A stretch of DNA of 64,000 nucleotides from Penicillus capitatus. Taxonomy: Eukaryota; Plantae; Chlorophyta. The stretch covers positions 120,796-184,795 of the forward strand of contig OZ287718.1 in assembly GCA_965649825.1 (NCBI GenBank), given 5' to 3'. The position numbers were made by a program, and so were the translations under genes. The notes beneath the pieces are model-generated. The model did no database searches, was not told the DNA's origin, and saw only the letters and a program-made list of their open reading frames with translations. Every line of letters starts with the position of its first letter. Within the stretch, counting starts at the first letter, position 1. Below are positions 1,065 through 64,000 of the stretch, in pieces.

Positions 1065-2319
1065 TCAGAAATTTGTGATGTACTCGTCTAGAGGCTGCAT
1101 GGACATCTCTGAAGGGAGCCCTTTCTCCTGTCGGTGAAGGAAGACTTTTGTCATGTAGCTAAGCTTCTGCTGTGTAAACGCTGTGTGTCGTTCATCTTTT
1201 GCGATCTCCTCTGCCATTGCATCCAAGTCTTTCTGAGCCACTGTGTCTGTGGAGCTCCAGATGGCCATAAGCACGCTCAGTTGTTTTTCAGAGAATGCTG
1301 AGAGTCTGTGCGACTTACAGATCTCTTGGTTCAAGGTCTCGAAATGGGACGATGACTCGATGCCAGAAGACAAAGCACGGTCCTTGTTGATCAGGTGCAT
1401 TGCGCACTGTAGACGCGTGAGATCGTCCTCTGTATAACACTTCATTCTGCAACACACTCCACATGATCACATTTCACAGTAAACACCATGAGGCACATAC
1501 CTGTGCGGTCGGAGACACTGGTCAAGCAGTGCTTGAATGAAATGCCTGCGCCTATAAGTGAGAATGGCAGATGATAAGAAGAGATCCACGATCGATGCTT
1601 CGTTAAAATGCCTAACGCATTCCATAGATCGAGTCGAGATATTTTGAATGTCGATGTGTATACTCGAGTCGATGGGGTTTGATGGTTTCTTTTGCCAGTG
1701 GATCCAGATAAGCTTCAAAGTAGAAACGCAGACGGGCCAGTCCCTTCCAGATCTCACCGATCTGCACTTCCGTAAACGACATTCCCCTTTCTTCGCGTAT
1801 CACTTCCCTCATGACCTCCACCAGCAGTTCCGAGATGCCAAAGAACACGCCGCATGGCTGAACACTGTTTGCCTTTGTTGCTATCCTTCCGAGGCGTCCC
1901 ATGGATTTGACCATCACCACCAACTGGATGTGATCTAGCTCAGAGAAGACCCGCTTTTCTCTCATATCTTTGCACATATCTCCAAGCAATTGAGGATGCA
2001 TGTAGCCCAGTAATGCACAGGAACTGAACATGAACACCATTCTGCGTGGTGTCCAAGAGGAGATCGCTTTCCTCGTCGTACAGAGCTGTGACAGATGATT
2101 CAGATCTTTATGCATGGCGTCTCTGGGAGGGCGAAATCGACAGTGCGCCAACTTGCGGAAACTCAGTTCCAGCTGCGAGGGTGTCGGTTGTTTCTCTTGT
2201 GTGACCTTGTTCATTATGCTCTCCCAACTCAGAGACTCCCATTCTTCATAGATCTTGGTAAAGCAGCGCACGTGTTTGAGATATATTGCATGAAATTTAA
2301 CACATCTGATGACTCTCAT
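1065..2319 (-). CDS. Organelle-targeted helical-repeat protein, degenerate OPR/FASTK-like (about 3 exons)
   Basis: ORF pieces 1612-2331, 1467-1757 and 1065-1457. First ATG at 2319 gives a presequence-like MRVIRCVKFHAIYLKHVRCF. Repeated motifs such as FTEVQIGEIWKGLARLRF, FNEASIVDLFLSSAILTY and FSEKQLSVLMAIWS resemble OPR consensus. Family call is an inference. Confidence 0.5.
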
Positions 2320-2354
2320 CGTATTAAACAATCACGGCAGCACGCAAAACGCAT

Positions 2355-4645
2355 ATGACTCCGACTTTGGAATTTGAAGAATTCTGGCCACAATGGCCTC
2401 GAGAGACATCCGGACGGTTGCTATTAAATCTCTGTGTAGAGACGTCGTTCGCTGAGTTGGTGCATCACATCTGGTCTCCCAATTCCCGTTTTCTAGTACT
2501 CAGTGTGCTCTTTCGCGAACCAGACAAAACTGCATGCGCAGGCAGAAGCGAATAGACAGAGAGGGTATGTAGACTTTCATTGCACCGATTGGATGAGTTC
2601 TGAAACGGAACTCCCCGACCTGCCTGGGGGTTTCGATTGGCGTTGGGAACATTCTCCAACTGTTAATTTTATTACTAATATTCGAGGAAAAATGAGAAAG
2701 GCGAGTGCAACCACCCATCCTGTACGTGTTTGGAGTGCGGATGAGAGAGTGCGTGTATATTAGGTGCGCTTTGAGGCGAGAAGTGGCAGTGTTTTGACAC
2801 AGCAGCCCTTTAAGACAGAAGAAGTTCAGAGATGCACACAGTACAAGGAGAAAGAGTGTATGGTCGTGGATGCATGTGTGCGATCAACGGCACCGTTGTG
2901 TGACAAAATTCGAGTTCTTTGCAGGCAACACATCCAATCCGATGTCGCCTTCTCCATTCGACAGACATTGTTGCAGATACACCATTAAGGCTGTGAAGCC
3001 AGAGAAGTGTCAGTTGAGAGTCGTTTACCACATCGAGTACCTCCAAAGTCTAAACGGGTTTCTCAAAGGCATTCTCGAGAGAGGCGCCAGAGGTATGGCA
3101 GACGAATAAATATCTGGATGTAGAAGAAAGGCGTCTTCTTTTCTAAATGTTCAGACGGGCTGACATCAAACTACGATACATTTGGCAAAGTGCTGCTTTC
3201 CTGTGTCTCTCCGATCTCAGAGAATGCTACTGCTGATTCAACACCAGAATCCCAACCGGATGTCGATGTGCTTCAATCCTCCGCTAAAAACATGTGATGC
3301 TCTTCTCGCTGTCCCATCAACAAATGTGTTTTCCTGCAGGCGTCCCTACCAAAGCGTTCTCAATTGGTCAGCAATTCCGCCTATATCTTTCATCTTTGCC
3401 TTGCTCAACATCCTGACAACAAGGTCATTATTGATGTGGTTTTTTGAACTTGTGGTGGAGTTTTCGATGGCTGTTCTCTATGTCGCATTTCTATATCTTC
3501 TCTTCCACGTGTGGACATTGATTAGGGAGAAATTCAATACAGGAGGTCTTTTCTTGATATCTTCGGAAATCGATTTCCGACAAGGGTTGATGACAGTATT
3601 TGTCCTTATCCTTTTGTTGGAGGGGTCACAGGTTTTCATCCATTTTTTCAAGAGACTGTTGAATATTTCTCGATTGTGCTGCATTCATCTGTACGGAAAG
3701 ATGAGTGAGTTTTTGGCCAGACTGCATGCAGAGAGCCATCGGAATCTCCACAGTAGCCCCTCCATCGATGACACTGTGAGCCTTGCTGAGCATCTGACGG
3801 ACGACGACCGGATCGATTCTGGATGCTCGGCAGAGACAGAGGTCGACGAAGGAAATCAGGATGATTCCTTCATCCGAAAAATTGTGAACGGATTCTGGAC
3901 TCTTCTATATTACAGTAAGACCAAACAGACACTGTCTGTCTGTCATTACGCTCTCCACATCCATCACCTGTTGCCGATGCTGTAGATAGTTCAGATTTCA
4001 GAAAGTTTGCGCATTCCATGCCAATCGAAGAACGCACCAATCCGGATGGTAGTGTCGTTGAAGAGCTGTTCGAGAATGAACGGCTCCAACCTTTCCGGGT
4101 GAGTGAGATCTGTCCAACAATACCACTAGAGAGAGATTGTGAATGAAATCGATGGCTGTCCTTCGTTCTAGGGTTGGGGACATCAGTGGCCGGGACATTT
4201 CCTCCCGACGGATAAGTTTAGTCATTGGAGTTCTTTTGATATGGATGGGAACATTGTCACATGTGACCAACGTGAAAAAGTCGAACCGTTTCTTCCACCC
4301 GGATGGGAATGGAAGGAAGAAGACTGGAAGGTAATGCAAGGACGCAACTCTGTTGCCAAGTGTGTTCACCATCTGATGCTCCCTCCATAGGTGGATCTGA
4401 GCAGAAGGAATTCGCAAGCTGTCGACAAACAAGGTTGGTATTACAGTTTGGACTTTCCATGGATCAAATTCGCCCCAGAGAAAAACAACGGAATCCGAAA
4501 GATGTCTGATTTCGTACGACGACGCAGATATACCAGAACACGCATCCGCAAGACTCAAGGTCTAAACGCTAATGCCCAAGCATCCACTTTCCAAGACAAT
4601 CCCTCCAATCCAACGCCATACTTCTCCTTTCTCCAGTTCCTTTAG
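2355..4645 (+). CDS. VASt (StART-like lipid-transfer) domain + transmembrane segments + C-terminal DysF (peroxin/ferlin) domain protein, multi-exon
   Basis: Spliced reading gives VASt-like segments LLLNLCVETSFAELVHHIWSPNSRFL, RQRGYVDFHCTDW and RYTIKAVKPEKCQLRVVYHIEYLQSLNGFLKGILERGARDGLTSNYDTFGKVL. Hydrophobic helices follow at about 3370-3650. The DysF signature is EELFENERLQPFRGWG..LPPGWEWKEEDWKVD..VDKQGWYYSLDF..SDFVRRRRYTRTR. GT-AG introns with matching phases link the VASt, TM and DysF segments. Confidence 0.75.
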
Positions 4646-4764: not shown

Positions 4765-7700
4765 TCACGGAGAGGATGTGCGCTTCATGGCGTCGCCACA
4801 ATGCCACCAAGTCCTGGCGGACTTTCTTTCTTTTCTGTCTGTCCCTCTTCGGTTTCTGTTTCGTCGAGAGATGCAATGGCTTTCTCTGCTACCTCTGATC
4901 GAGGCTGACGACTAAAGCCGTATCCCAAGCTGTACCCAGATTCTTGAGACAGACTCTGTAATTCAGCAAAATGGTCTCGGCGGAATTCATCTAAAATGTT
5001 ACCGATCTCCTCCTCTGGAATACGAACCTGCCAAAGAAAAACGATCTATCGGTTTTTTATATCGTAGAGAGACGTGACCTGTGCAAGGACGGTCGCAGCA
5101 AGTTGAAGACTGGGTTCCAGTGTTTCGGGAACAACCACATTGGCTCCTGCTCGTTCAAGATTGCGAGCATGTTCTAGATCGAAAGCACGGACATATGTCT
5201 TGACATGAGGAAAATGATGCTTCATGGTCCACACACAGCGATAGTTGGAACCTGTGGGAGTGACAGCGATCGGGCCAGATCGCAAGCAAACGGTAACTAG
5301 GCCATACCTGGACTGTCCAGCACAACAACGATACAAGAGGCTCGTGCTGCACCCAAGCTATGCAAGACTTGTTGGCTGCCTGCATCTCCAAAGTAAACAG
5401 GCAGATCAAGATTCTTGCCATTCTGTCGTCAGAAAAGTCAGATGGGATGCTCATGCCTCGACGAGATGCACACGCACTTGCACTCTCTGGCTGACAACAT
5501 CGACAGCCACAAAGGGGATCAGCCGTTCGCTCAGTAACTGCGCAATCAACTGTCCCACACGGCCGAAACCGGCAATGATGATGTGATCCTTCAGGTGTCC
5601 TGTTTCGACCTCATTTGGAGTCATTGCCTGGCACACACGTTGGTCAACGGAACAGAGAAGAGGGTAAGAAAGTCAAGCCCATCCTGCCGACCTTCATATC
5701 GCCCTTTTCAAAAATCCTCCCCAACCGAGCGCCGGCAATAGCAAGATAAGGCAGCAATGCCATGGAGAGTGAGACAACAAGATAAAGCTGTGTTACCAAT
5801 GCTGTGGGTAAGACGCCTTGAGAAGCAGCTTCTCCGAATGCAACAAAGGCGAATTCGCCGCCAGGTGCCAACAGAAGACCCGATCTCAATGCAGTCAGTC
5901 GAGAAATGCCAAACAGTGGACCCACTACTGCCATCACTGCCACTTTGCCAGTCAAAAGGAAGGAGAGTTGGAAAATGAGGTTCCGCCAACTCTCGATCAT
6001 GAGACCGACAGAGATCTCCATTCCGACTGTCATGAAGAAGAGACCCATAAGCAATCCCTTGTAAGGCTCGATGTCAGATTCCACCTATTTGCGAGAAGCA
6101 CGAGAGAAATCGGACATGGATAGCAGGGATCGCACCTGCACAACGTATTCTGTTTCTGCTAGTAGAAGACCCGCTAGGAAGGCCCCAAGCGCAAGAGAAA
6201 GGCCTGCGAGCTGTGTGATTAGACTGGTGCCCAGAACAACTAGAAGTGTAAGAGCAGCAAAAATCTCCTTGTTTTCTAGACGAGCAACGAGACTGTAAAT
6301 TGGTCTGACCCACACGCGCCCGACAGAAATAATCCCTAGAGCAGAGGAAAAAGTGGATCTGTACGATCCTCAAACGCACGATGACGGAACATGCCTGTGA
6401 TGCAGATCACTGCTTTGATTGCTGCAATACTGAGCGCCTTCATGATCACATCAAGTCCACCGCCAGATGCTGAATTCTTGTTTGACAGCAGAGGAATGAG
6501 CATGAGAACCACAACCACTGCCAGATCTTGCAACAGGAGAATGGAGAACGTTGCCCGGCCGTGACGTGATCCAGTCTCAGCACGTTCTTGAAGGACCTGA
6601 TCGGCACAAAGGCACTGTCCAATAAACACATTGTTCATGGCAGTAGTAAAGCGACCTGCATGGCGACAGCTGTCGACGACAGAGCTAAACCAGATCCCAG
6701 AATGATAGCACCGGGCCCCGGCAATCCAGCAAGCGACCCTGGATGGCAATGATGTGTAACATGTGTGCTAACAGAAGAGTGATTTTGATGTGACCTGCCA
6801 CTAAGGCGACGGCGATTGTGGTGACCAACACCTGAGTCGATCCCATTCCAAATACCATCTTGGCCATAGACCTCAGTCTTTCAAGACTGAGTTCCAAACC
6901 GATGTTAAAAAGTAAGAACACGACACCCAACTCTGCCAACGTCCTGACTTCCTCAATGTTCTTAATGATACCCAATGCATGAGGTCCGACCATGGCACCT
7001 GCTACCTAGGACTCACCACAAATTCATGGAGGTGAGAGTGGCACTGGCTTACAAGAAATCCGAGAACGGGAGTGGCACCAGGAAGGACCCGACAAACAAC
7101 TGGCACCATGACGACACTCATAAGCAGAAGCCAGATGGTTCGGATGAACCCCGCTTCAGATCCATGACTCTCGGGAAGCAAAGCTGAAAACGCTTCTGCT
7201 GGACGGGATATCAGACGCTGAAATGAAAGCGTTGCAGCTGTGATGAGCTTTCCTCCCAAGGGAGAAAAAGCAAGAACAAGAGCCGCAGCGAGAACAACGA
7301 TGCCGATCGCCAATGGAACACGGTGTTCGTTGACAAATGTCTTGACGGAAGCTTGGAATGGAGATTTGGCATCCACGAGGACAACATCTTCTGCACTGTC
7401 ATCGCCTGTGCCTCCAGTGCTCTCTTTATCGAGCAGTACTTTGGGTTGGAGTCCATTTTCCCTCAAAACCTCTTCCCTGTCAGTCAAGAATGATGGCTGG
7501 ATGGAACACGCATGAGGTCTGAGATCAAATGTCTCACATTTCTGCTCGGATTCGCCTGGCACCTTCTGTATCCAGCTCCTGCGATTCCAGCATATCAATT
7601 TCAGACATTGCTTTGTTAAAAGCAGTTTCAGTCTCTTTCAGAACAGCCTTGGACTCCAACTCAACAGTGACGGCTGACTGCGCTGCCTTCATCACAGCCT

Positions 7701-53549: not shown

Positions 53550-55869
53550 CGTCTCAAAAGCTGGACTGCTCGACTCTAACTCCGTCCTCAGAAAGCTACG
53601 ACACCGAAGAACGACTTCAAAAACACGGACCGTGTTAAGAACAATAACCGTAAGAATGCACAGAACTCGTTCCTAGACCAGAGGCAGCCACGTGTCGCAC
53701 GAAGAGATCTTAGTCATCCAATGATGCGACATCGAAGGCGGACAAACCATTCGCCGTCACAGATCGACAAACAGGACGCGCCCTTTTGAAAATGATCTAT
53801 AGGAGGTAAGGGTATTTAACAACATTCCAGCCGACATGCGAAGCCTCCTGGTGCGGTCACGTGCTCAAGTCCTCGACGCCACATCAGGTGAAACTGGTCG
53901 TGTCAGTACAATATCGAAGACACTCTTGCGCGCGGCGGATCGTTTCGAGCACCCAACGTCGCGTCAGGTGTAACGCGTGCTGTCTGTCAGCGACTCGCAG
54001 AAGTGCTCTATGACGCCGGCGACACGGTCGAGCGAGGGTGGGAATGTGTCGGCGGGGTCGAGTGGATGCTGTAGGACCCTTGGTTGGAGCCCGACGGCGG
54101 CGTCCTCGGGCTGTGGCGCGGCCTTTCCGGATTCGACATTTCGGCACACTGCGGCCGACGGCGGGCCCACCGTCGGCAGTCTTCGACGCAGACGGGTGCG
54201 GGACGGCTCGGGACACGCCGCGGATGCCAATCGGTGGAGGCTCGTTTGGCTCTGGGCGGTGTCGTACGGAGTTGAAATCGTGGCGGTTACGTCGCATCAG
54301 GTGTAACCTGGCCTGTCAGTACGATCTGGAAGTGCACGACGACGCCGGCGACACGGTCGAGCGAGGGCGGGGATGTGTCGGCGGGGTCGAGTGGATGCCG
54401 ACGGACCCTTGGTTGGAGCCCGGCGGCGGCGTGCTCGGGCTGTGGCGCGGCCTTTCCGGATTCGACATTTCGGCACACTGCGGCCCACGGAGGGCCCACC
54501 GTCGGCAGTCTTCGACGCAGACGGGTGCGGGACGCCTCGGGACACGCCGCGGATGCCGATCGGTGGAGGCTCGTTTGGCTCTGGGCGGTGTCGTACGGGG
54601 TTGAAATCGTGGCCGTTACGTCGCATCAGGTGTAACCTGGCCTGTCAGTGACTCGCAGAAGTGCACGACGACGCCGGCGACACGGTCGAGCGAGGGCGGG
54701 GATGTGTCGGCGGGGTCGAGTGGATGCGGACGGACCCTTGGTTGGAGCCCGACGGCGGCGTCCTCGGGCTGTGGCGCGGCCTTTCCGGATTCGACATTTC
54801 GGCACACTGCGGCCGACGGCGGGCCCACCGTCGGCAGTCTTCGACGCAGACGGGTGCGGGACGCCTCGGGACACACCGCGGATGCCGATCGGTGGAGGCT
54901 CGTTTGGCTCTGGGCGGTGTCGTACGGAGTTGAAATCGTGGCGGTTACGTCGCATCAGGTGTAACCTGGCCTGTCAGTACGATCTGGAAGTGCACGACGA
55001 CGCCGGCGACACGGTCGAGCGAGGGCGGGGATGTGTCGGCGGGGTCGAGTGGATGCCGACGGACCCTTGGTTGGAGCCCGGCGGCGGCGTGCTCGGGCTG
55101 TGGCGCGGCCTTTCCGGATTCGACATTTCGGCACACTGCGGCCCACGGAGGGCCCACCGTCGGCAGTCTTCGACGCAGACGGGTGCGGGACGCCTCGGGA
55201 CACGCCGCGGATGCCGATCGGTGGAGGCTCGTTTGGCTTTGGGCGGTGTCGTACTTGGTTGAAATCGTGGCGGTTACGTCGCATCAGGTGTAACCTGGCC
55301 TGTCAGTACGATCTGGAAGTGCACGACGACGCCGGCGACACGGTCGAGCGAGGGCGGGGATGGGTCGGCGGGGACGAGTGGATGCCGACGGACCCTTGGT
55401 TGGAGCCCGACGGCGGCGTCCTCGGGCCGTGGCGCGGCCTTTCCGGATTCGACATTTCGGCACACTGCGGCCGACGGCGGGCCCACCGTCGGCAGTCTTC
55501 GACGCAGACGGGTGCGGGACGCCTCGGGACACGCCGCGGATGCCGATCGGTGGAGGCTCGTTTGGCTCTGGGCGGTGTCGTACTTGGTTGAAATCGTGGC
55601 GGTTACGTCGCATCAGGTGTAACCTGGCCTGTCAGTACGATCTGGAAGTGCACGACGACGCCGGCGACACGGTCGAGCGAGGGCGGGGATGGGTCGGCGG
55701 GGTCGAGTGGATGCCGACGGACCCTTGGTTGGAGCCCGACGGCGGCGTCCTCGGGCCGTGGCGCGGCCTTTCCGGATTCGACATTTCGGCACACTGCGGC
55801 CGACGGCGGGCCCACCGTCGGCAGTCTTCGACGCAGACGGGTGCGGGACGCCTCGGGACACACCGCGGA

Positions 55870-58800
55870 TGCCAATCGGTGGAGGCTCGTTTGGCTTTGG
55901 GCGGTGTCGTACGGGGTTGAAATCGTGGCGGTTACGTCGCATCAGGTGTAACCTGGCCTGTCAGTGACTCGCAGAAGTGCACGACGACGCCGGCGACACG
56001 GTCGAGCGAGGGCGGGGATGTGTCGGCGGGGTCGAGTGGATGCGGACGGACCCTTGGTTGGAGCCCGACGGCGGCGTCCTCGGGCTGTGGCGCGGCCTTT
56101 CCGGATTCGACATTTCGGCACACTGCGGCCGACGGCGGGCCCACCGTCGGCAGTCTTCGACGCAGACGGGTGCGGGACGCCTCGGGACACACCGCGGATG
56201 CCGATCGGTGCAAGCTCGTTTGGCTTTGGGCGGTGTCGTACTTGGTTGAAATCGTGGCGGTTACGTCGCATCAGGTGTAACCTGGCCTGTCAGTACGATC
56301 TGGAAGTGCACGACGACGCCGGCGACACGGTCGAGCGAGGGCGGGGATGTGTCGGCGGGGTCGAGTGGATGCCGACGGACCCTTGGTTGGAGCCCGGCGG
56401 CGGCGTGCTCGGGCTGTGGCGCGGCCTTTCCGGATTCGACATTTCGGCACACTGCGGCCGACGGAGGGCCCACCGTCGGCAGTCTTCGACGCAGACGGGT
56501 GCGGGACGCCTCGGGACACGTCGCGGATGCCGATCGGTGGAGGCTCGTTTGGCTCTGGGCGGTGTCGTACGGAGTTGAAATCGTGGCGGTTACGTCGCAT
56601 CAGGTGTAACCTGGCCTGTCAGTACGATCTGGAAGTGCACGACGACGCCGGCGACACGGTCGAGCGAGGGCGGGGATGTGTCGGCGGGGACGAGTGGATG
56701 CTGACGGACCCTTGGTTGGAGCCCGACGGCGGCGTGCTCGGGCTGTGGCGCGGCCTTTCCGGATTCGACATTTCGGCACACTGCGGCCGACGGAGGGCCC
56801 ACCGTCGGCAGTCTTCGACGCAGACGGGTGCGGGACGGCTCGGGACACGCCGCGGATGCCAATCGGTGGAGGCTCGTTTGGCTCTGGGCGGTGTCGTACG
56901 GAGTTGAAATCGTGGCCGTTACGTCGCATCAGGTGTAACCTGGCCTGTCAGTACGATCTGGAAGTGCACGACGACGCCGGCGACACGGTCGAGCGAGGGT
57001 GGGGATGTGTCGGCGGGGACGAGTGGATGCTGTAGGACCCTTGGTTGGCGACCGACGGCGGCGTCCTCGGGCTGTGGCGCGGCCTTTCCGGATTCGACAT
57101 TTCGGCACACTGCGGCCGACGGCGGGCCCACCGTCGGCAGTCTTCGACGCAGACGGGTGCGGGACGCCTCGGGACACGCCGCGGATGCCAATCGGTGGAG
57201 GCTCGTTTGGCTTTGGGCGGTGTCGTACGGAGTTGAAATCGTGGCGGTTACGTCGCATCAGGTGTAACCTGGCCTGTCAGTACGATCTGGAAGTGCACGA
57301 CGACGCCGGCGACACGGTCGAGCGAGGCCGGGGATGTGTCGGCGGGGTCGAGTGGATGCCGACGGACCCTTGGTTGGAGCCCGGCGGCGGCGTGCTCGGG
57401 CTGTGGCGCGGCCTTTCCGGATTCGACATTTCGGCACACTGCGGCCCACGGAGGGCCGACCGTCGGCAGTCTTCGACGCAGACGGGTGCGGGACGCCTCG
57501 GGACACGCCGCGGATGCCGATCGGTGGAGGCTCGTTTGGCTCTGGGCGGTGTCGTACGGAGTTGAAATCGTGGCGGTTACGTCGCATCAGGTGTAACCTG
57601 GCCTGTCAGTACGATCTGGAAGTGCACGACGACGCCGGCGACACGGTCGAGCGAGGGCGGGGATGGGTCGGCGGGGTCGAGTGGATGCCGACGGACCCTT
57701 GGTTGGAGCCCGACGGCGGCGTCCTCGGGCCGTGGCGCGGCCTTTCCGGATTCGACATTTCGGCACACTGCGGCCGACGGAGGGCCCACCGTCGGCAGTC
57801 TTCGACGCAGACGGGTGCGGGACGCCTCGGGACACGCCGCGGATGCCAATCGGTGGAGGCTCGTTTGGCTCTGGGCGGTGTCGTACGGGGTTGAAATCGT
57901 GGCGGTTACGTCGCATCAGGTGTAACCTGGCCTGTCAGTGACTCGCAGAAGTGCACGACGACGCCGGCGACACGGTCGAGCGAGGGCGGGGATGTGTCGG
58001 CGGGGTCGAGTGGATGCGGACGGACCCTTGGTTGGAGCCCGACGGCGGCGTCCTCGGGCTGTGGCGCGGCCTTTCCGGATTCGACATTTCGGCACACTGC
58101 GGCCGACGGCGGGCCCACCGTCGGCAGTCTTCGACGCAGACGGGTGCGGGACGCCTCGGGACACGCCGCGGATGCCAATCGGTGGAGGCTCGTTTGGCTC
58201 TGGGCGGTGTCGTACTTGGTTGAAATCGTGGCCGTTACGTCGCATCAGGTGTAACCTGGCCTGTCAGTACGATCTGGAAGTGCACGACGACGCCGGCGAC
58301 ACGGTCGAGCGAGGGTGGGGATGTGTCGGCGGGGTCGAGTGGATGCCGACGGACCCTTGGTTGGAGCCCGACGGCGGCGTCCTCGGGCCGTGGCGCGGCC
58401 TTTCCGGATTCGACATTTCGGCACACTGCGGCCGACGGCGGGCCCACCGTCGGCAGTCTTCGACGCAGACGGGTGCGGGACGCCTCGGGACACGCCGCGG
58501 ATGCCAATCGGTGGAGGCTCGTTTGGCTTTGGGCGGTGTCGTACGGGGTTGAAATCGTGGCGGTTACGTCGCATCAGGTGTAACCTGGCCTGTCAGTGAC
58601 TCGCAGAAGTGCACGACGACGCCGGCGACACGGTCGAGCGAGGGCGGGGATGTGTCGGCGGGGTCGAGTGGATGCGGACGGACCCTTGGTTGGAGCCCGA
58701 CGGCGGCGTCCTCGGGCTGTGGCGCGGCCTTTCCGGATTCGACATTTCGGCACACTGCGGCCGACGGCGGGCCCACCGTCGGCAGTCTTCGACGCAGACG

Positions 58801-61660
58801 GGTGCGGGACGCCTCGGGACACACCGCGGATGCCGATCGGTGCAAGCTCGTTTGGCTTTGGGCGGTGTCGTACTTGGTTGAAATCGTGGCGGTTACGTCG
58901 CATCAGGTGTAACCTGGCCTGTCAGTACGATCTGGAAGTGCACGACGACGCCGGCGACACGGTCGAGCGAGGGCGGGGATGTGTCGGCGGGGTCGAGTGG
59001 ATGCCGACGGACCCTTGGTTGGAGCCCGGCGGCGGCGTGCTCGGGCTGTGGCGCGGCCTTTCCGGATTCGACATTTCGGCACACTGCGGCCGACGGAGGG
59101 CCCACCGTCGGCAGTCTTCGACGCAGACGGGTGCGGGACGCCTCGGGACACGTCGCGGATGCCGATCGGTGGAGGCTCGTTTGGCTCTGGGCGGTGTCGT
59201 ACGGAGTTGAAATCGTGGCGGTTACGTCGCATCAGGTGTAACCTGGCCTGTCAGTACGATCTGGAAGTGCACGACGACGCCGGCGACACGGTCGAGCGAG
59301 GGCGGGGATGTGTCGGCGGGGACGAGTGGATGCTGACGGACCCTTGGTTGGAGCCCGACGGCGGCGTGCTCGGGCTGTGGCGCGGCCTTTCCGGATTCGA
59401 CATTTCGGCACACTGCGGCCGACGGAGGGCCCACCGTCGGCAGTCTTCGACGCAGACGGGTGCGGGACGGCTCGGGACACGCCGCGGATGCCAATCGGTG
59501 GAGGCTCGTTTGGCTCTGGGCGGTGTCGTACGGAGTTGAAATCGTGGCCGTTACGTCGCATCAGGTGTAACCTGGCCTGTCAGTACGATCTGGAAGTGCA
59601 CGACGACGCCGGCGACACGGTCGAGCGAGGGTGGGGATGTGTCGGCGGGGACGAGTGGATGCTGTAGGACCCTTGGTTGGCGACCGACGGCGGCGTCCTC
59701 GGGCTGTGGCGCGGCCTTTCCGGATTCGACATTTCGGCACACTGCGGCCGACGGCGGGCCCACCGTCGGCAGTCTTCGACGCAGACGGGTGCGGGACGCC
59801 TCGGGACACGCCGCGGATGCCAATCGGTGGAGGCTCGTTTGGCTTTGGGCGGTGTCGTACGGAGTTGAAATCGTGGCGGTTACGTCGCATCAGGTGTAAC
59901 CTGGCCTGTCAGTACGATCTGGAAGTGCACGACGACGCCGGCGACACGGTCGAGCGAGGCCGGGGATGTGTCGGCGGGGTCGAGTGGATGCCGACGGACC
60001 CTTGGTTGGAGCCCGGCGGCGGCGTGCTCGGGCTGTGGCGCGGCCTTTCCGGATTCGACATTTCGGCACACTGCGGCCCACGGAGGGCCGACCGTCGGCA
60101 GTCTTCGACGCAGACGGGTGCGGGACGCCTCGGGACACGCCGCGGATGCCGATCGGTGGAGGCTCGTTTGGCTCTGGGCGGTGTCGTACGGAGTTGAAAT
60201 CGTGGCGGTTACGTCGCATCAGGTGTAACCTGGCCTGTCAGTACGATCTGGAAGTGCACGACGACGCCGGCGACACGGTCGAGCGAGGGCGGGGATGGGT
60301 CGGCGGGGTCGAGTGGATGCCGACGGACCCTTGGTTGGAGCCCGACGGCGGCGTCCTCGGGCCGTGGCGCGGCCTTTCCGGATTCGACATTTCGGCACAC
60401 TGCGGCCGACGGAGGGCCCACCGTCGGCAGTCTTCGACGCAGACGGGTGCGGGACGCCTCGGGACACGCCGCGGATGCCAATCGGTGGAGGCTCGTTTGG
60501 CTCTGGGCGGTGTCGTACGGGGTTGAAATCGTGGCGGTTACGTCGCATCAGGTGTAACCTGGCCTGTCAGTGACTCGCAGAAGTGCACGACGACGCCGGC
60601 GACACGGTCGAGCGAGGGCGGGGATGTGTCGGCGGGGTCGAGTGGATGCGGACGGACCCTTGGTTGGAGCCCGACGGCGGCGTCCTCGGGCTGTGGCGCG
60701 GCCTTTCCGGATTCGACATTTCGGCACACTGCGGCCGACGGCGGGCCCACCGTCGGCAGTCTTCGACGCAGACGGGTGCGGGACGCCTCGGGACACGCCG
60801 CGGATGCCAATCGGTGGAGGCTCGTTTGGCTCTGGGCGGTGTCGTACTTGGTTGAAATCGTGGCCGTTACGTCGCATCAGGTGTAACCTGGCCTGTCAGT
60901 ACGATCTGGAAGTGCACGACGACGCCGGCGACACGGTCGAGCGAGGGTGGGGATGTGTCGGCGGGGTCGAGTGGATGCCGACGGACCCTTGGTTGGAGCC
61001 CGACGGCGGCGTCCTCGGGCCGTGGCGCGGCCTTTCCGGATTCGACATTTCGGCACACTGCGGCCGACGGCGGGCCCACCGTCGGCAGTCTTCGACGCAG
61101 ACGGGTGCGGGACGCCTCGGGACACGCCGCGGATGCCAATCGGTGGAGGCTCGTTTGGCTTTGGGCGGTGTCGTACGGGGTTGAAATCGTGGCGGTTACG
61201 TCGCATCAGGTGTAACCTGGCCTGTCAGTGACTCGCAGAAGTGCACGACGACGCCGGCGACACGGTCGAGCGAGGGCGGGGATGTGTCGGCGGGGTCGAG
61301 TGGATGCGGACGGACCCTTGGTTGGAGCCCGACGGCGGCGTCCTCGGGCTGTGGCGCGGCCTTTCCGGATTCGACATTTCGGCACACTGCGGCCGACGGC
61401 GGGCCCACCGTCGGCAGTCTTCGACGCAGACGGGTGCGGGACGCCTCGGGACACACCGCGGATGCCGATCGGTGCAAGCTCGTTTGGCTTTGGGCGGTGT
61501 CGTACTTGGTTGAAATCGTGGCGGTTACGTCGCATCAGGTGTAACCTGGCCTGTCAGTACGATCTGGAAGTGCACGACGACGCCGGCGACACGGTCGAGC
61601 GAGGGCGGGGATGTGTCGGCGGGGTCGAGTGGATGCCGACGGACCCTTGGTTGGAGCCCG
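55870..61660. repeat. Higher-order repeat of 8 monomers (2632 bp), about 2.2 copies
   Basis: Diagnostic variants recur at exactly 2632 bp. For example, gtgcaagctc occurs at about 56210, 58842 and 61474, and identical ORFs start at 56020/58652/61284 and 57007/59639. Confidence 0.93.
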
Positions 61661-62989
61661 ACGGCGGCGTGCTCGGGCTGTGGCGCGGCCTTTCCGGATT
61701 CGACGTTTCGGCAGATTGCGACCCACGGAGGGCCGACCGTCGGCAGACTTCGACGCAGACGGGTGCGGGACGCCTCGGGACACGTCGCGGATGCCGATCG
61801 GTGGAGGCTCGTTTGGCTCTGGGCGGTGTCGTACGGAGTTGAAATCGTGGCCGTTACGTCGCATCAGGTGTAACCTGGCCTGTCAGTACGATCTGGAAGT
61901 GCACGACGACGCCGGCGACACGGTCGAGCGAGGGCGGGGATGTGTCGGCGGGGACGAGTGGATGCTGTAGGACCCTTGGTTGGCGACCGACGGCGGCGTC
62001 CTCGGGCCGTGGCGCGGCCTTTCCGGATTCGACATTTCGGCACACTGCGGCCGACGGCGGGCCCACCGTCGGCAGTCTTCGACGCAGACGGGTGCGGGAC
62101 GCCTCGGGACACGCCGCGGATGCCAATCGGTGGAGGCTCGTTTGGCTCTGGGCGGTGTCGTACGGAGTTGAAATCGTGGCCGTTACGTCGCATCAGGTGT
62201 AACCTGGCCTGTCAGTACGATCTGGAAGTGCACGACGACGCCGGCGACACGGTCGAGCGAGGGTGGGGATGTGTCGGCGGGGACGAGTGGATGCTGACGG
62301 ACCCTTGGTTGGAGCCCGACGGCGGCGTGCTCGGGCTGTGGCGCGGCCTTTCCGGATTCGACATTTCGGCACACTGCGGCCGACGGAGGGCCCACCGTCG
62401 GCAGTCTTCGACGCAGACGGGTGCGGGACGGCTCGAGACACGCCGCGGATGCCAATCGGTGGAGGCTCGTTTGGCTCTGGGCGGTGTCGTACGGAGTTGA
62501 AATCGTGGCCGTTACGTCGCATCAGGTGTAACCTGGCCTGTCAGTACGATCTGGAAGTGCACGACGACGCCGGCGACACGGTCGAGCGAGGGTGGGGATG
62601 TGTCGGCGGGGTCGAGTGGATGCTGACGGACCCTTGGTTGGAGCCCGACGGCGGCGTCCTCGGGCTGTGGCGCGGCCTTTCCGGATTCGACATTTCGGCA
62701 GAGTGCGGCCGACGGCGGGCCCACCGTCGGCAGTCTTCGACGCAGACGGGTGCGGGACGCCTCGGGACACGCCGCGGATGCCAATCGGTGGAGGCTCGTT
62801 TGGCTTTGGGCGGTGTCGTACTTGGTTGAAATCGTGGCGGTTACGTCGCATCAGGTGTAACCTGGCCTGTCAGTACGATCTGGAAGTGCACGACGACGCC
62901 GGCGACACGGTCGAGCGAGGGCGGGGATGTGTCGGCGGGGTCGAGTGGATGCCGACGGACCCTTGGTTGGAGCCCGGCGGCGGCGTCCT

Positions 62990-64000
62990 CGGCCTGTGGC
63001 CCGACCCTTCCGGATTCCACATTTCGGCAAACTGCGACGTACTGAGGGCCGGCCGTCGGCGGAATTCGACGCGGACGGGTGCGGGACGCCTCGGGACACG
63101 TCGCGGATGCCAGTCGGTGGAAGTTTGTCCCTCTTTGGGCGCTGTCGTACGGAGTTGAAATCGGGCACCAGACGTCACATCGGGTGTAACCTGGCCTGTC
63201 AGTACGATCTGGAAGTGCACGATGACGCCGGCGACGTGGTCGAGCGAGGGTGGGGATGGGTCGGCGGGGTCGAGTGGATGCCAAGGGACCCAAGTTTGGC
63301 GACCGACGGCGGCGTCCTCGGCCTGTGGCCCGACCCTTCCGGATTCCACATTTCGGCAAACTGCGACGTACTGAGGGCCGGCCGTCGGCGGAATTCGACG
63401 CGGACGGGTGCGGGACGCCTCGGGACACGTCGCGGATGCCAGTCGGTGGAAGTTTGTCCCGCTTTGGGCGCTGTCGTACGGAGTTGAAATCGGGCACCAG
63501 ACGTCACATCGGGTGTAACCTGGCCTGTCAGTACGATCTGGAAGTGCACGATGACGCCGGCGACGTGGTCGAGCGAGGGTGGGGATGGGTCGGCGGGGTC
63601 GAGTGGATGCCAAGGGACCCAAGTTTGGCGACCGACGGCGGCGTCCTCGGCCCGTGGCGCGGCCTTTCTGGATTCCACATTTCGGCAAACTGCGACTTAC
63701 TGAGGGCCGACCGTGGGCGGAATTCGACGCGGACGGGTGCGGGACGCCTCGAGACACGTCGCGGATGCCAGTCGGTGGAAGTTTGTCCCGCTTTGGGCGC
63801 TGTCGTACGGAGTTGAAATCGGGCACCAGACGTCACATCAGCCGTAATTTGACCTGTCAGTACGATCTGGAAGTGCACGATGACGCCGGCGACGTGGTCG
63901 AGCGAGGGTGGGGATGGGTCGGCGGGGTCGAGTGGATGCCAAGGGACCCAAGTTTGGCGACCGACGGCGGCGTCCTCGGCCTGTGGCGCGGCCTTTCTGG
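62990..64000. repeat. Diverged satellite subfamily with the same 329-bp period
   Basis: Monomers carry many shared substitutions, e.g. ggattccacatttcggcaaactgcgac, ggaattcgacgcggacgg and aaatcgggcaccagacgtcacatc. Confidence 0.9.

Follow-up and report, generated by a model that had tools for sequence, protein, structure and literature searches.

A green-algal gene joining a VASt domain, a hydrophobic block and a DysF domain encodes a candidate membrane-anchored lipid-transfer protein

The VASt domains of the Lam and Aster proteins move sterols at contact sites of the endoplasmic reticulum (ER), aimed there by a GRAM domain. In most proteins VASt is paired with a lipid-binding targeting domain, and Khafif et al., who defined VASt in 2014, found Pex24p among its associated domains and called the arrangement VASt-VASt-Pex24p an oomycete innovation (PMC4082322). 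The Pex23/Pex30 family, described as fungus-specific in a comparative-genomics review (PMC8172628), uses its DysF domain to bind phosphatidic acid, and this domain is required for ER-peroxisome and ER-vacuole contacts; the Pex30 proteins themselves carry no lipid-transfer cavity and "lack an obvious hydrophobic cavity" (PMC12101078). A DysF domain is also found in VPS13M, a lipid-transfer protein of the bridge-like type in Viridiplantae, where it is inserted in the VAB domain (PMC10683392). Here we describe a gene on a stretch of 64,000 nucleotides (nt) of Penicillus capitatus DNA (contig OZ287718.1, positions 120,796 to 184,795 of the forward strand), referred to as the window below. It lies on the plus strand at window positions 2355-4645 and joins a VASt domain, a hydrophobic block and a DysF domain, for which an earlier reading of the DNA, hereafter the original prediction, had proposed a role as a sterol shuttle.

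In the spliced model, nine exons form an open frame of 605 amino acids (aa) that begins with the ATG at 2355 and is closed by the TAG at 4643-4645. The eight introns are each 46-73 nt long, six of them with GT-AG borders and two with a GC donor, and reading frames interrupted by such very short introns identify the sequence as eukaryotic DNA. We consider it practically certain that this is a single gene with the architecture VASt-hydrophobic block-DysF, because an orthologue aligns with the product end to end, a related organism has an uninterrupted open reading frame (ORF) across the critical region, and transcript-derived ORFs carry both domains. The orthologue, P0001, is a protein of 620 aa taken from a collection of eukaryote proteomes; it matches the window protein with E = 1.5e-134, 39% BLASTP identity and 100% coverage, from the first residue through to a common C-terminal motif. 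The related organism is represented by contig L001 (Logan assembly, run SRR33785045), whose gene is syntenic with that of the window; its ORF at 6001-7014 (P0026, 337 aa) reads without a break from the C-terminal helix of the VASt domain (DGLAANYKTF...) across the hydrophobic block as far as the beginning of DysF (...ENERLQPFR). L001 lacks counterparts of window introns 5 and 6, and no stop interrupts this region. The transcript-derived ORFs with VASt and Pex24p come from MMETSP and comprise P0016 (Picochlorum oklahomense), with a Pex24p match of 20 bits that lies under the Pfam cut-off, and P0037 (complete, 993 aa).

The same picture emerged from the wider family. More than 20 homologues besides P0001 are contiguous across the junction of exons 5 and 6 in the alignment, and when alignment A2, which comprises the window model and its 26 hits, was scanned sequence by sequence with Pfam, 25/27 sequences matched Pex24p and 18/27 matched VASt at E <= 0.001. 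The first ATG of exon 6 lies well inside the hydrophobic block (the methionine of ...SLLMWFF...). Intron 5 (3294-3339, 46 nt, cat/GTGATG...CTGCAG) contains an in-frame TGA at 3295-3297 that overlaps its donor, and an isoform retaining this intron may encode VASt alone, as a soluble protein of about 240 aa. The original prediction had placed VASt, hydrophobic block and DysF in one gene, as P0001, L001 and the transcript-derived ORFs now agree, and had named the TGA near 3297 as the point at which that gene might instead fall into two; this codon is intronic and does not split the gene, L001 reading straight through.

Exon 1 (2355..2495) provides the start codon, the N-terminus and the first VASt strand and helices; its N-terminal sequence MTPTLEFEEFWPQWP can be aligned from the first residue onwards with those of P0001 (MTLELSFDEYWPHWP) and the L001 orthologue. 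The VASt domain continues in exon 2 (2542..2700), which is followed by intron 2 (2701-2763) with the GC donor aag/GCGAGT, and in exon 3 (2764..2924), which encodes the VASt core ...APLCDKIRVLCR and precedes the GC-AG intron 3 (2925-2976, donor cag/GCAACA). Judging from the alignments and the Pfam match, exon 4 (2977..3092) holds VASt beta-strands and the start of the C-terminal helix, which follows as DGLTSNYDTF... in exon 5 (3155..3293) together with a poorly conserved linker. In exon 6 (3340..3914), a conserved W-x-x-I-P-P motif leads into the hydrophobic block, which is followed by an acidic linker of low conservation, the end of which lies in exon 7 (3986..4098) with the first DysF strand ...VVEELFENERLQPFR. 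DysF extends through exon 8 (4172..4330; GWGHQWPGHFLPTD...GWEWKEEDWK) into exon 9 (4391..4645), where its end (VD...GWYYSLDF...VRRRRYTRTR) is followed by a tail, the motif PYFSFLQFL and the stop codon TAG. The complete L001 model comprises 629 aa and six introns of 39-46 nt, four of which share their positions with window introns 1-4 and two of which are the counterparts of introns 7 and 8 of the window. The intron after PFR (window exon 7) is kept in L001.

The GC-AG forms of introns 2 and 3 are the preferred model, judged from the sequence comparison, and their positions are matched by L001. Splicing intron 3 as GC-AG gives a gap-free alignment with P0001 and other homologues, and its counterpart in L001 also has a GC donor (cag/GCGGGT), while the L001 counterpart of intron 2 has a GT donor exactly where the window has its GC donor. 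GT-only alternatives were tried and set aside. For intron 3, a GT-only splice (2898-2964 or 2898-2976) removes CDKIRVLCR from the VASt core, which leaves a gap against all homologues, and the Pfam VASt score falls to 29.1 bits versus 47.7-49.2 with the GC-AG model. For intron 2, a GT donor at 2722 adds the seven residues ASATTHP, absent in 10/10 aligned homologues; this in-frame donor may be used as an alternative splice. The phase-compatible introns by which the original prediction had joined the parts thus stand insofar as the 605-aa frame is open, with the correction that two introns need GC donors. GC-AG introns appear unusually frequent at this locus (2/8 in the window gene and 2/6 in the L001 orthologue, at 5819-5857 and 7130-7174): one is kept in position with a GC donor in both species, and another has GC in L001 and GT in the window. 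Gene finders restricted to GT-AG introns would mis-model genes of this lineage, the present one included. On the minus strand, an ORF of 186 aa (3998-4558) overlaps the conserved plus-strand DysF exons; because of this overlap and the absence of any match in the Pfam scan, we take it, as originally predicted, to be the longer shadow ORF covering these exons.

Turning to the domains, the spliced window protein matches the Pfam VASt profile (PF16016) at aa 28-194 with 49.2 bits (cut-off 27), covering profile positions 7-152 of 152. Compared with solved VASt domains, the family profile matched Arabidopsis At5g50170 at 2e-12 and also Aster-C, Aster-A, Ysp2/Lam2 and Lam4. AlphaFold2 (AF2) structure models were made for two orthologues of the window protein, P0001, which is 43% identical to it and was modelled with the family alignment, and the fragment P0038. 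The VASt domain in the P0001 model has a predicted local distance difference test score (pLDDT) > 90 and superposes on sterol- or ligand-bound Aster/Lam domains with target-normalised template modelling (TM) scores of 0.81-0.88 (Foldseek; 7azn, 6gqf, 5yqj, 6cay). In the window protein the VASt domain is accordingly predicted, from profile match and orthologue model, to extend over aa ~20-205 with the StARkin lipid-transfer fold. A sterol would be the default guess for its ligand, by analogy with the Lam/Aster domains. No GRAM or PH family at E <= 1, and no C2, was found in the Pfam scan of the window protein, in which VASt and Pex24p were the sole matches.

The Pfam Pex24p profile (PF06398) matches aa 449-570, corresponding to window 4039-4537, with 32.1 bits (cut-off 26.8), and the match is limited to profile positions 242-358, i.e. 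the DysF part. Among solved DysF domains, the family profile matched the inner DysF domains of myoferlin (2k2o, 1.5e-6) and dysferlin (4cah, 3.6e-6) and the DysF of TECPR1 (8p5p, 5e-3). For the orthologue fragment P0038, all Foldseek hits of the AF2 model at E <= 1e-3 (9/9) were DysF domains, with target-normalised TM scores of 0.58-0.69 against isolated DysF domains. Hence the two terminal domains named in the original prediction were recovered, each above its Pfam gathering score and each with the expected fold in an orthologue, for the VASt of P0001 the helix-grip fold with a lipid pocket known from Aster/Lam structures and for P0038 the DysF fold, in which two long antiparallel beta-strands are combined with W/R stacking. 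Identity between the window and L001 amounts to 72% in DysF, 51% in VASt, 24% in the hydrophobic block and about 18% in the linkers; all invariant columns of the family fall in DysF, including the motif E-N-x-R-x-Q-P in its first strand. At the very C-terminus, a conserved hydrophobic and aromatic motif P-x-F-x-F-x-x-F-L-COOH was observed (window 4616-4642, L001 7391-7417), in the variants PYFSFLQFL (window), PYFSFFNFL (P0001 and P0038) and PSFLFLDFL (L001). It is absent in the Bryopsis, trebouxiophyte and chlorophycean homologues.

The hydrophobic block spans aa 246-343 (window 3359-3652) and comprises segments at aa 256-301 (3389-3526) and 320-343 (3581-3652), in which the Kyte-Doolittle score peaks at 2.25 and 2.04; the corresponding helices in the P0001 AF2 model are at 278-313 and 322-387. 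Most full-length homologues have such a block between VASt and DysF, many of them with a second, weaker segment. Its position is central, about 260 residues including DysF coming after it, and the linker to DysF is acidic and poorly conserved, with a length of ~100 aa in the window protein and several hundred in some members. The block is, as far as sequence tells, a family-specific membrane anchor.

Taken together, we lean modestly towards a membrane-anchored lipid-transfer and tethering protein in which DysF stands in place of the GRAM domain of Lam/Aster, a reading that draws on analogy with these systems. Like the Lam/Aster and Pex30 proteins, such a protein would be an ER resident, and its anchor would make an even number of spans, leaving VASt and DysF both cytosolic. 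DysF, on its flexible linker, would recognise an anionic or defect-rich membrane, either rich in phosphatidic acid (cf. Pex30) or marked by another lipid (cf. TECPR1), and binding in trans or at an ER subdomain would hold the protein at a contact site or organelle-forming subdomain. There, the VASt pocket would extract and deliver a lipid, a sterol by default. The sterol shuttle at ER-peroxisome or ER-lipid-droplet contacts put forward in the original prediction may be regarded as a reasonable analogy.

Several observations weigh against this lipid-transfer reading. The window protein has three overlapping hydrophobic stretches (256-274, 268-301 and 320-343), and were the number of spans odd, the membrane would separate VASt from DysF. 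ER residence is taken over from the analogy alone, and the closest solved relative of the VASt domain by sequence is a plant domain whose ligand could not be established. The specificity of DysF domains varies, phosphatidic acid being bound by Pex30 and sphingomyelin reported for TECPR1 (PMC12101078). For this organism the gene model rests on genomic sequence and calls on two GC donors. Finally, the isolated hydrophobic blocks of 10 members gave no Pex24p N-terminal or Reticulon match at Pfam E <= 10, in a search of limited sensitivity, and the Pex24p match of P0001 extends back only to profile position 150. The tie to the Pex30 family therefore runs through the DysF part only, as no similarity of the block to the membrane domain of Pex30 could be detected; the link that the original prediction drew to this family from DysF is borne out for that domain by the Pex24p match, and the membrane block finds no counterpart in the Pex24p N-terminal or Reticulon profiles.

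The most durable alternative, which we hold to be unlikely yet worth weighing, is a Pex30-like scaffold that organises membrane subdomains or contacts, and in which VASt would act as a lipid sensor, regulator or local lipid-presenting module and not as a carrier between membranes. It would fit the far stronger conservation of DysF than of VASt between the window and L001 (72% vs 51%), the confinement of all invariant columns to DysF, and the divergence of VASt below the Pfam threshold in several homologues (e.g. P0008, 24.9 bits), and Pex30-family function is known to rely on DysF together with oligomeric scaffolding (PMC12101078). However, the VASt fold is confidently predicted in the orthologue model and superposes on bona fide sterol-transfer domains, and the membrane block has no similarity to the reticulon-homology region of Pex30.

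Less probable still is anchoring outside the ER, for instance in the chloroplast envelope or in a lipid droplet, peroxisome or vacuole, in which case the protein would serve a pathway of storage lipids or one related to the plastid. A role as an intermediate in lipid traffic between ER and chloroplast has been proposed for phosphatidic acid. The family-specific anchor without a match to ER-protein families, the confinement of the family, as far as seen, to chlorophytes and the clade-specific hydrophobic C-terminal motif would all be compatible with such a location, but an N-terminal targeting peptide is not evident, because the N-terminus is conserved and the VASt domain already begins near residue 20, and the characterised membrane-anchored VASt and transmembrane DysF proteins are all ER residents (PMC8172628, PMC12101078). 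As for a model artefact merging a VASt-only gene that ends at TGA 3295-3297 with a separate transmembrane DysF gene downstream, it draws on the in-frame TGA directly after exon 5, on a gene model built for this organism from genomic sequence and on the soluble ~240-aa VASt-only protein that retention of intron 5 would give, and is nevertheless extremely improbable in view of the L001 orthologue without intron or stop at that point, of P0001 and more than 20 other homologues contiguous over the junction, of both domains in transcript-derived ORFs and of an exon 6 that offers no ATG until inside the hydrophobic block.

The lipid-transfer reading applies to a family whose named members are all core chlorophytes: Bryopsis in the Ulvophyceae, Chlorella, Micractinium, Auxenochlorella, Parachlorella, Picochlorum, Myrmecia, Apatococcus and Trebouxia in the Trebouxiophyceae, and Chlamydomonas eustigma and Astrephomene in the Chlorophyceae. 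The best hits of the window itself likewise suggest a chlorophyte, probably close to the Bryopsidales. Searched exhaustively with a profile, a set of 1.84 billion representative proteins yielded 82 clusters below E = 1e-30. Among the named clusters looked up, the strongest DysF matches outside the family were land-plant VPS13 proteins (VPS13_N ... C2, Pex24p, VAB, VPS13_C). A protein search from P0037 aimed at oomycete or other non-chlorophyte relatives returned only four metagenome proteins. P0037 itself, together with P0201, P0202 and P0066 (MMETSP and marine metagenomes), forms a divergent clade in which VASt and a hydrophobic block are accompanied by a tandem pair of DysF-like repeats. In P0027 (Micractinium conductrix), VASt-DysF is followed by a GDSL-lipase and a hemerythrin domain; this may be one more lipid-related fusion, or else the gene model may have been merged.

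Chlorophyte members are present in NCBI and UniRef under the labels hypothetical, "VASt domain-containing" or "Peroxin/Ferlin domain-containing". In the literature, we found no paper joining "VASt domain" with Chlamydomonas and no functional study of the family. The combination of VASt and DysF is thus catalogued but uncharacterised, and its chlorophyte form with a single VASt has not been discussed before. On this point the original prediction went too far in regarding the combination as not described, the pairing of VASt with Pex24p having been published for oomycetes in 2014 and chlorophyte entries standing in the databases.

The window and L001 share the gene order DIM1 (+), 239-aa ORF (-), VASt-DysF (+) and K+/H+ antiporter (-). 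In the window, DIM1, which encodes a thioredoxin-like protein of the U5 snRNP, is an intronless gene at 615-1043 on the plus strand with a Pfam match of 224.8 bits, and the antiporter is a multi-exon gene of the Na_H_Exchanger/TrkA_N type at about 5000-6750 on the minus strand. The conserved 239-aa ORF (minus strand, window 1612-2331, L001 4548-5267) is arranged head-to-head with the VASt-DysF gene, which starts at 2355 (L001 5278); it is 51% identical between window and L001, and the Pfam scan assigned it to no family. Its boundary lies 10-24 nt from the start codon of the VASt-DysF gene, its first window ATG being ~35 nt away, and therefore the divergent promoter must be extremely short or the 5' untranslated regions overlap. 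At the far end, a tandem satellite occupies 54000-63997 and continues past the window end, with ~30 copies of a 329-bp unit at 95% matches. Its G+C content is 68% with a strong, constant GC skew of +0.17, compared with about 47% G+C (range about 46-50%) in the remainder of the window, and the ORFs within it merely recur with the 329-bp unit. Rfam and tRNA scans of the window gave no matches.

With respect to its wider meaning, the family extends transmembrane DysF proteins beyond fungi and the pairing of VASt with Pex24p beyond oomycetes. We tentatively suggest, while regarding it as somewhat doubtful, that DysF could serve the lipid-transfer proteins of the green lineage as a general address module, combined with VASt in chlorophytes and with VPS13M across Viridiplantae, and that the algal family could supply the cavity that Pex30-type proteins lack. 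If this were true, Pex30-type sites would be places of StARkin-mediated transfer of a sterol, or possibly of phosphatidic acid or diacylglycerol, while lipid droplets or peroxisomes form or in exchange between ER and plastid, and the fusion would serve as a natural "Rosetta stone". Work on yeast Pex30 leaves open how lipid moves, those proteins having no transfer cavity (PMC12101078). Because it joins DysF and an anchor to a bona fide lipid-transfer fold, the conserved algal protein would be a model on which lipid transfer guided by DysF can be tested directly, and together with the DysF of VPS13M the family suggests a recurring green-lineage design.

Comparison with the known systems places the algal protein between several of them. 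With Lam/Ltc (Ysp2/Lam2, Lam4) and Aster/GRAMD1 it shares a VASt/StARkin domain, an anchor and a separate lipid-recognising targeting domain. In Lam/Aster, however, this targeting domain is a GRAM located N-terminal to VASt, whereas the window protein has no GRAM or PH-like domain and the algal family instead carries a C-terminal DysF on a long linker; a single C-terminal transmembrane helix in Lam/Aster contrasts with a central anchor, usually of two hydrophobic segments, in the algae, and the ligand of the algal VASt is assigned only by analogy. The Pex23/Pex30 proteins, which act in the ER at peroxisome, lipid-droplet and vacuole contacts, likewise have a membrane domain N-terminal to DysF (in the window protein, aa 246-343 before 449-570), but the algal protein has an extra N-terminal VASt and its block shows no Pex24p N-terminal or reticulon similarity. 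TECPR1, dysferlin and myoferlin share the DysF fold (TM scores of 0.58-0.69 at 25-31% identity, measured on the orthologue fragment P0038), whereas the remainder of these proteins, tectonin repeats in TECPR1 and C2 arrays in the ferlins, is unrelated to the algal protein and their reported lipid specificities differ. The oomycete VASt-VASt-Pex24p proteins contain the same Pfam pair in the same order, VASt being N-terminal to Pex24p (PMC4082322), with two tandem VASt domains there versus one VASt match in the chlorophyte window protein. VPS13M, in turn, is a giant, soluble, tunnel-type protein without VASt or membrane anchor, unlike the algal family, and resembles it in joining DysF to a lipid-transfer module within the green lineage.

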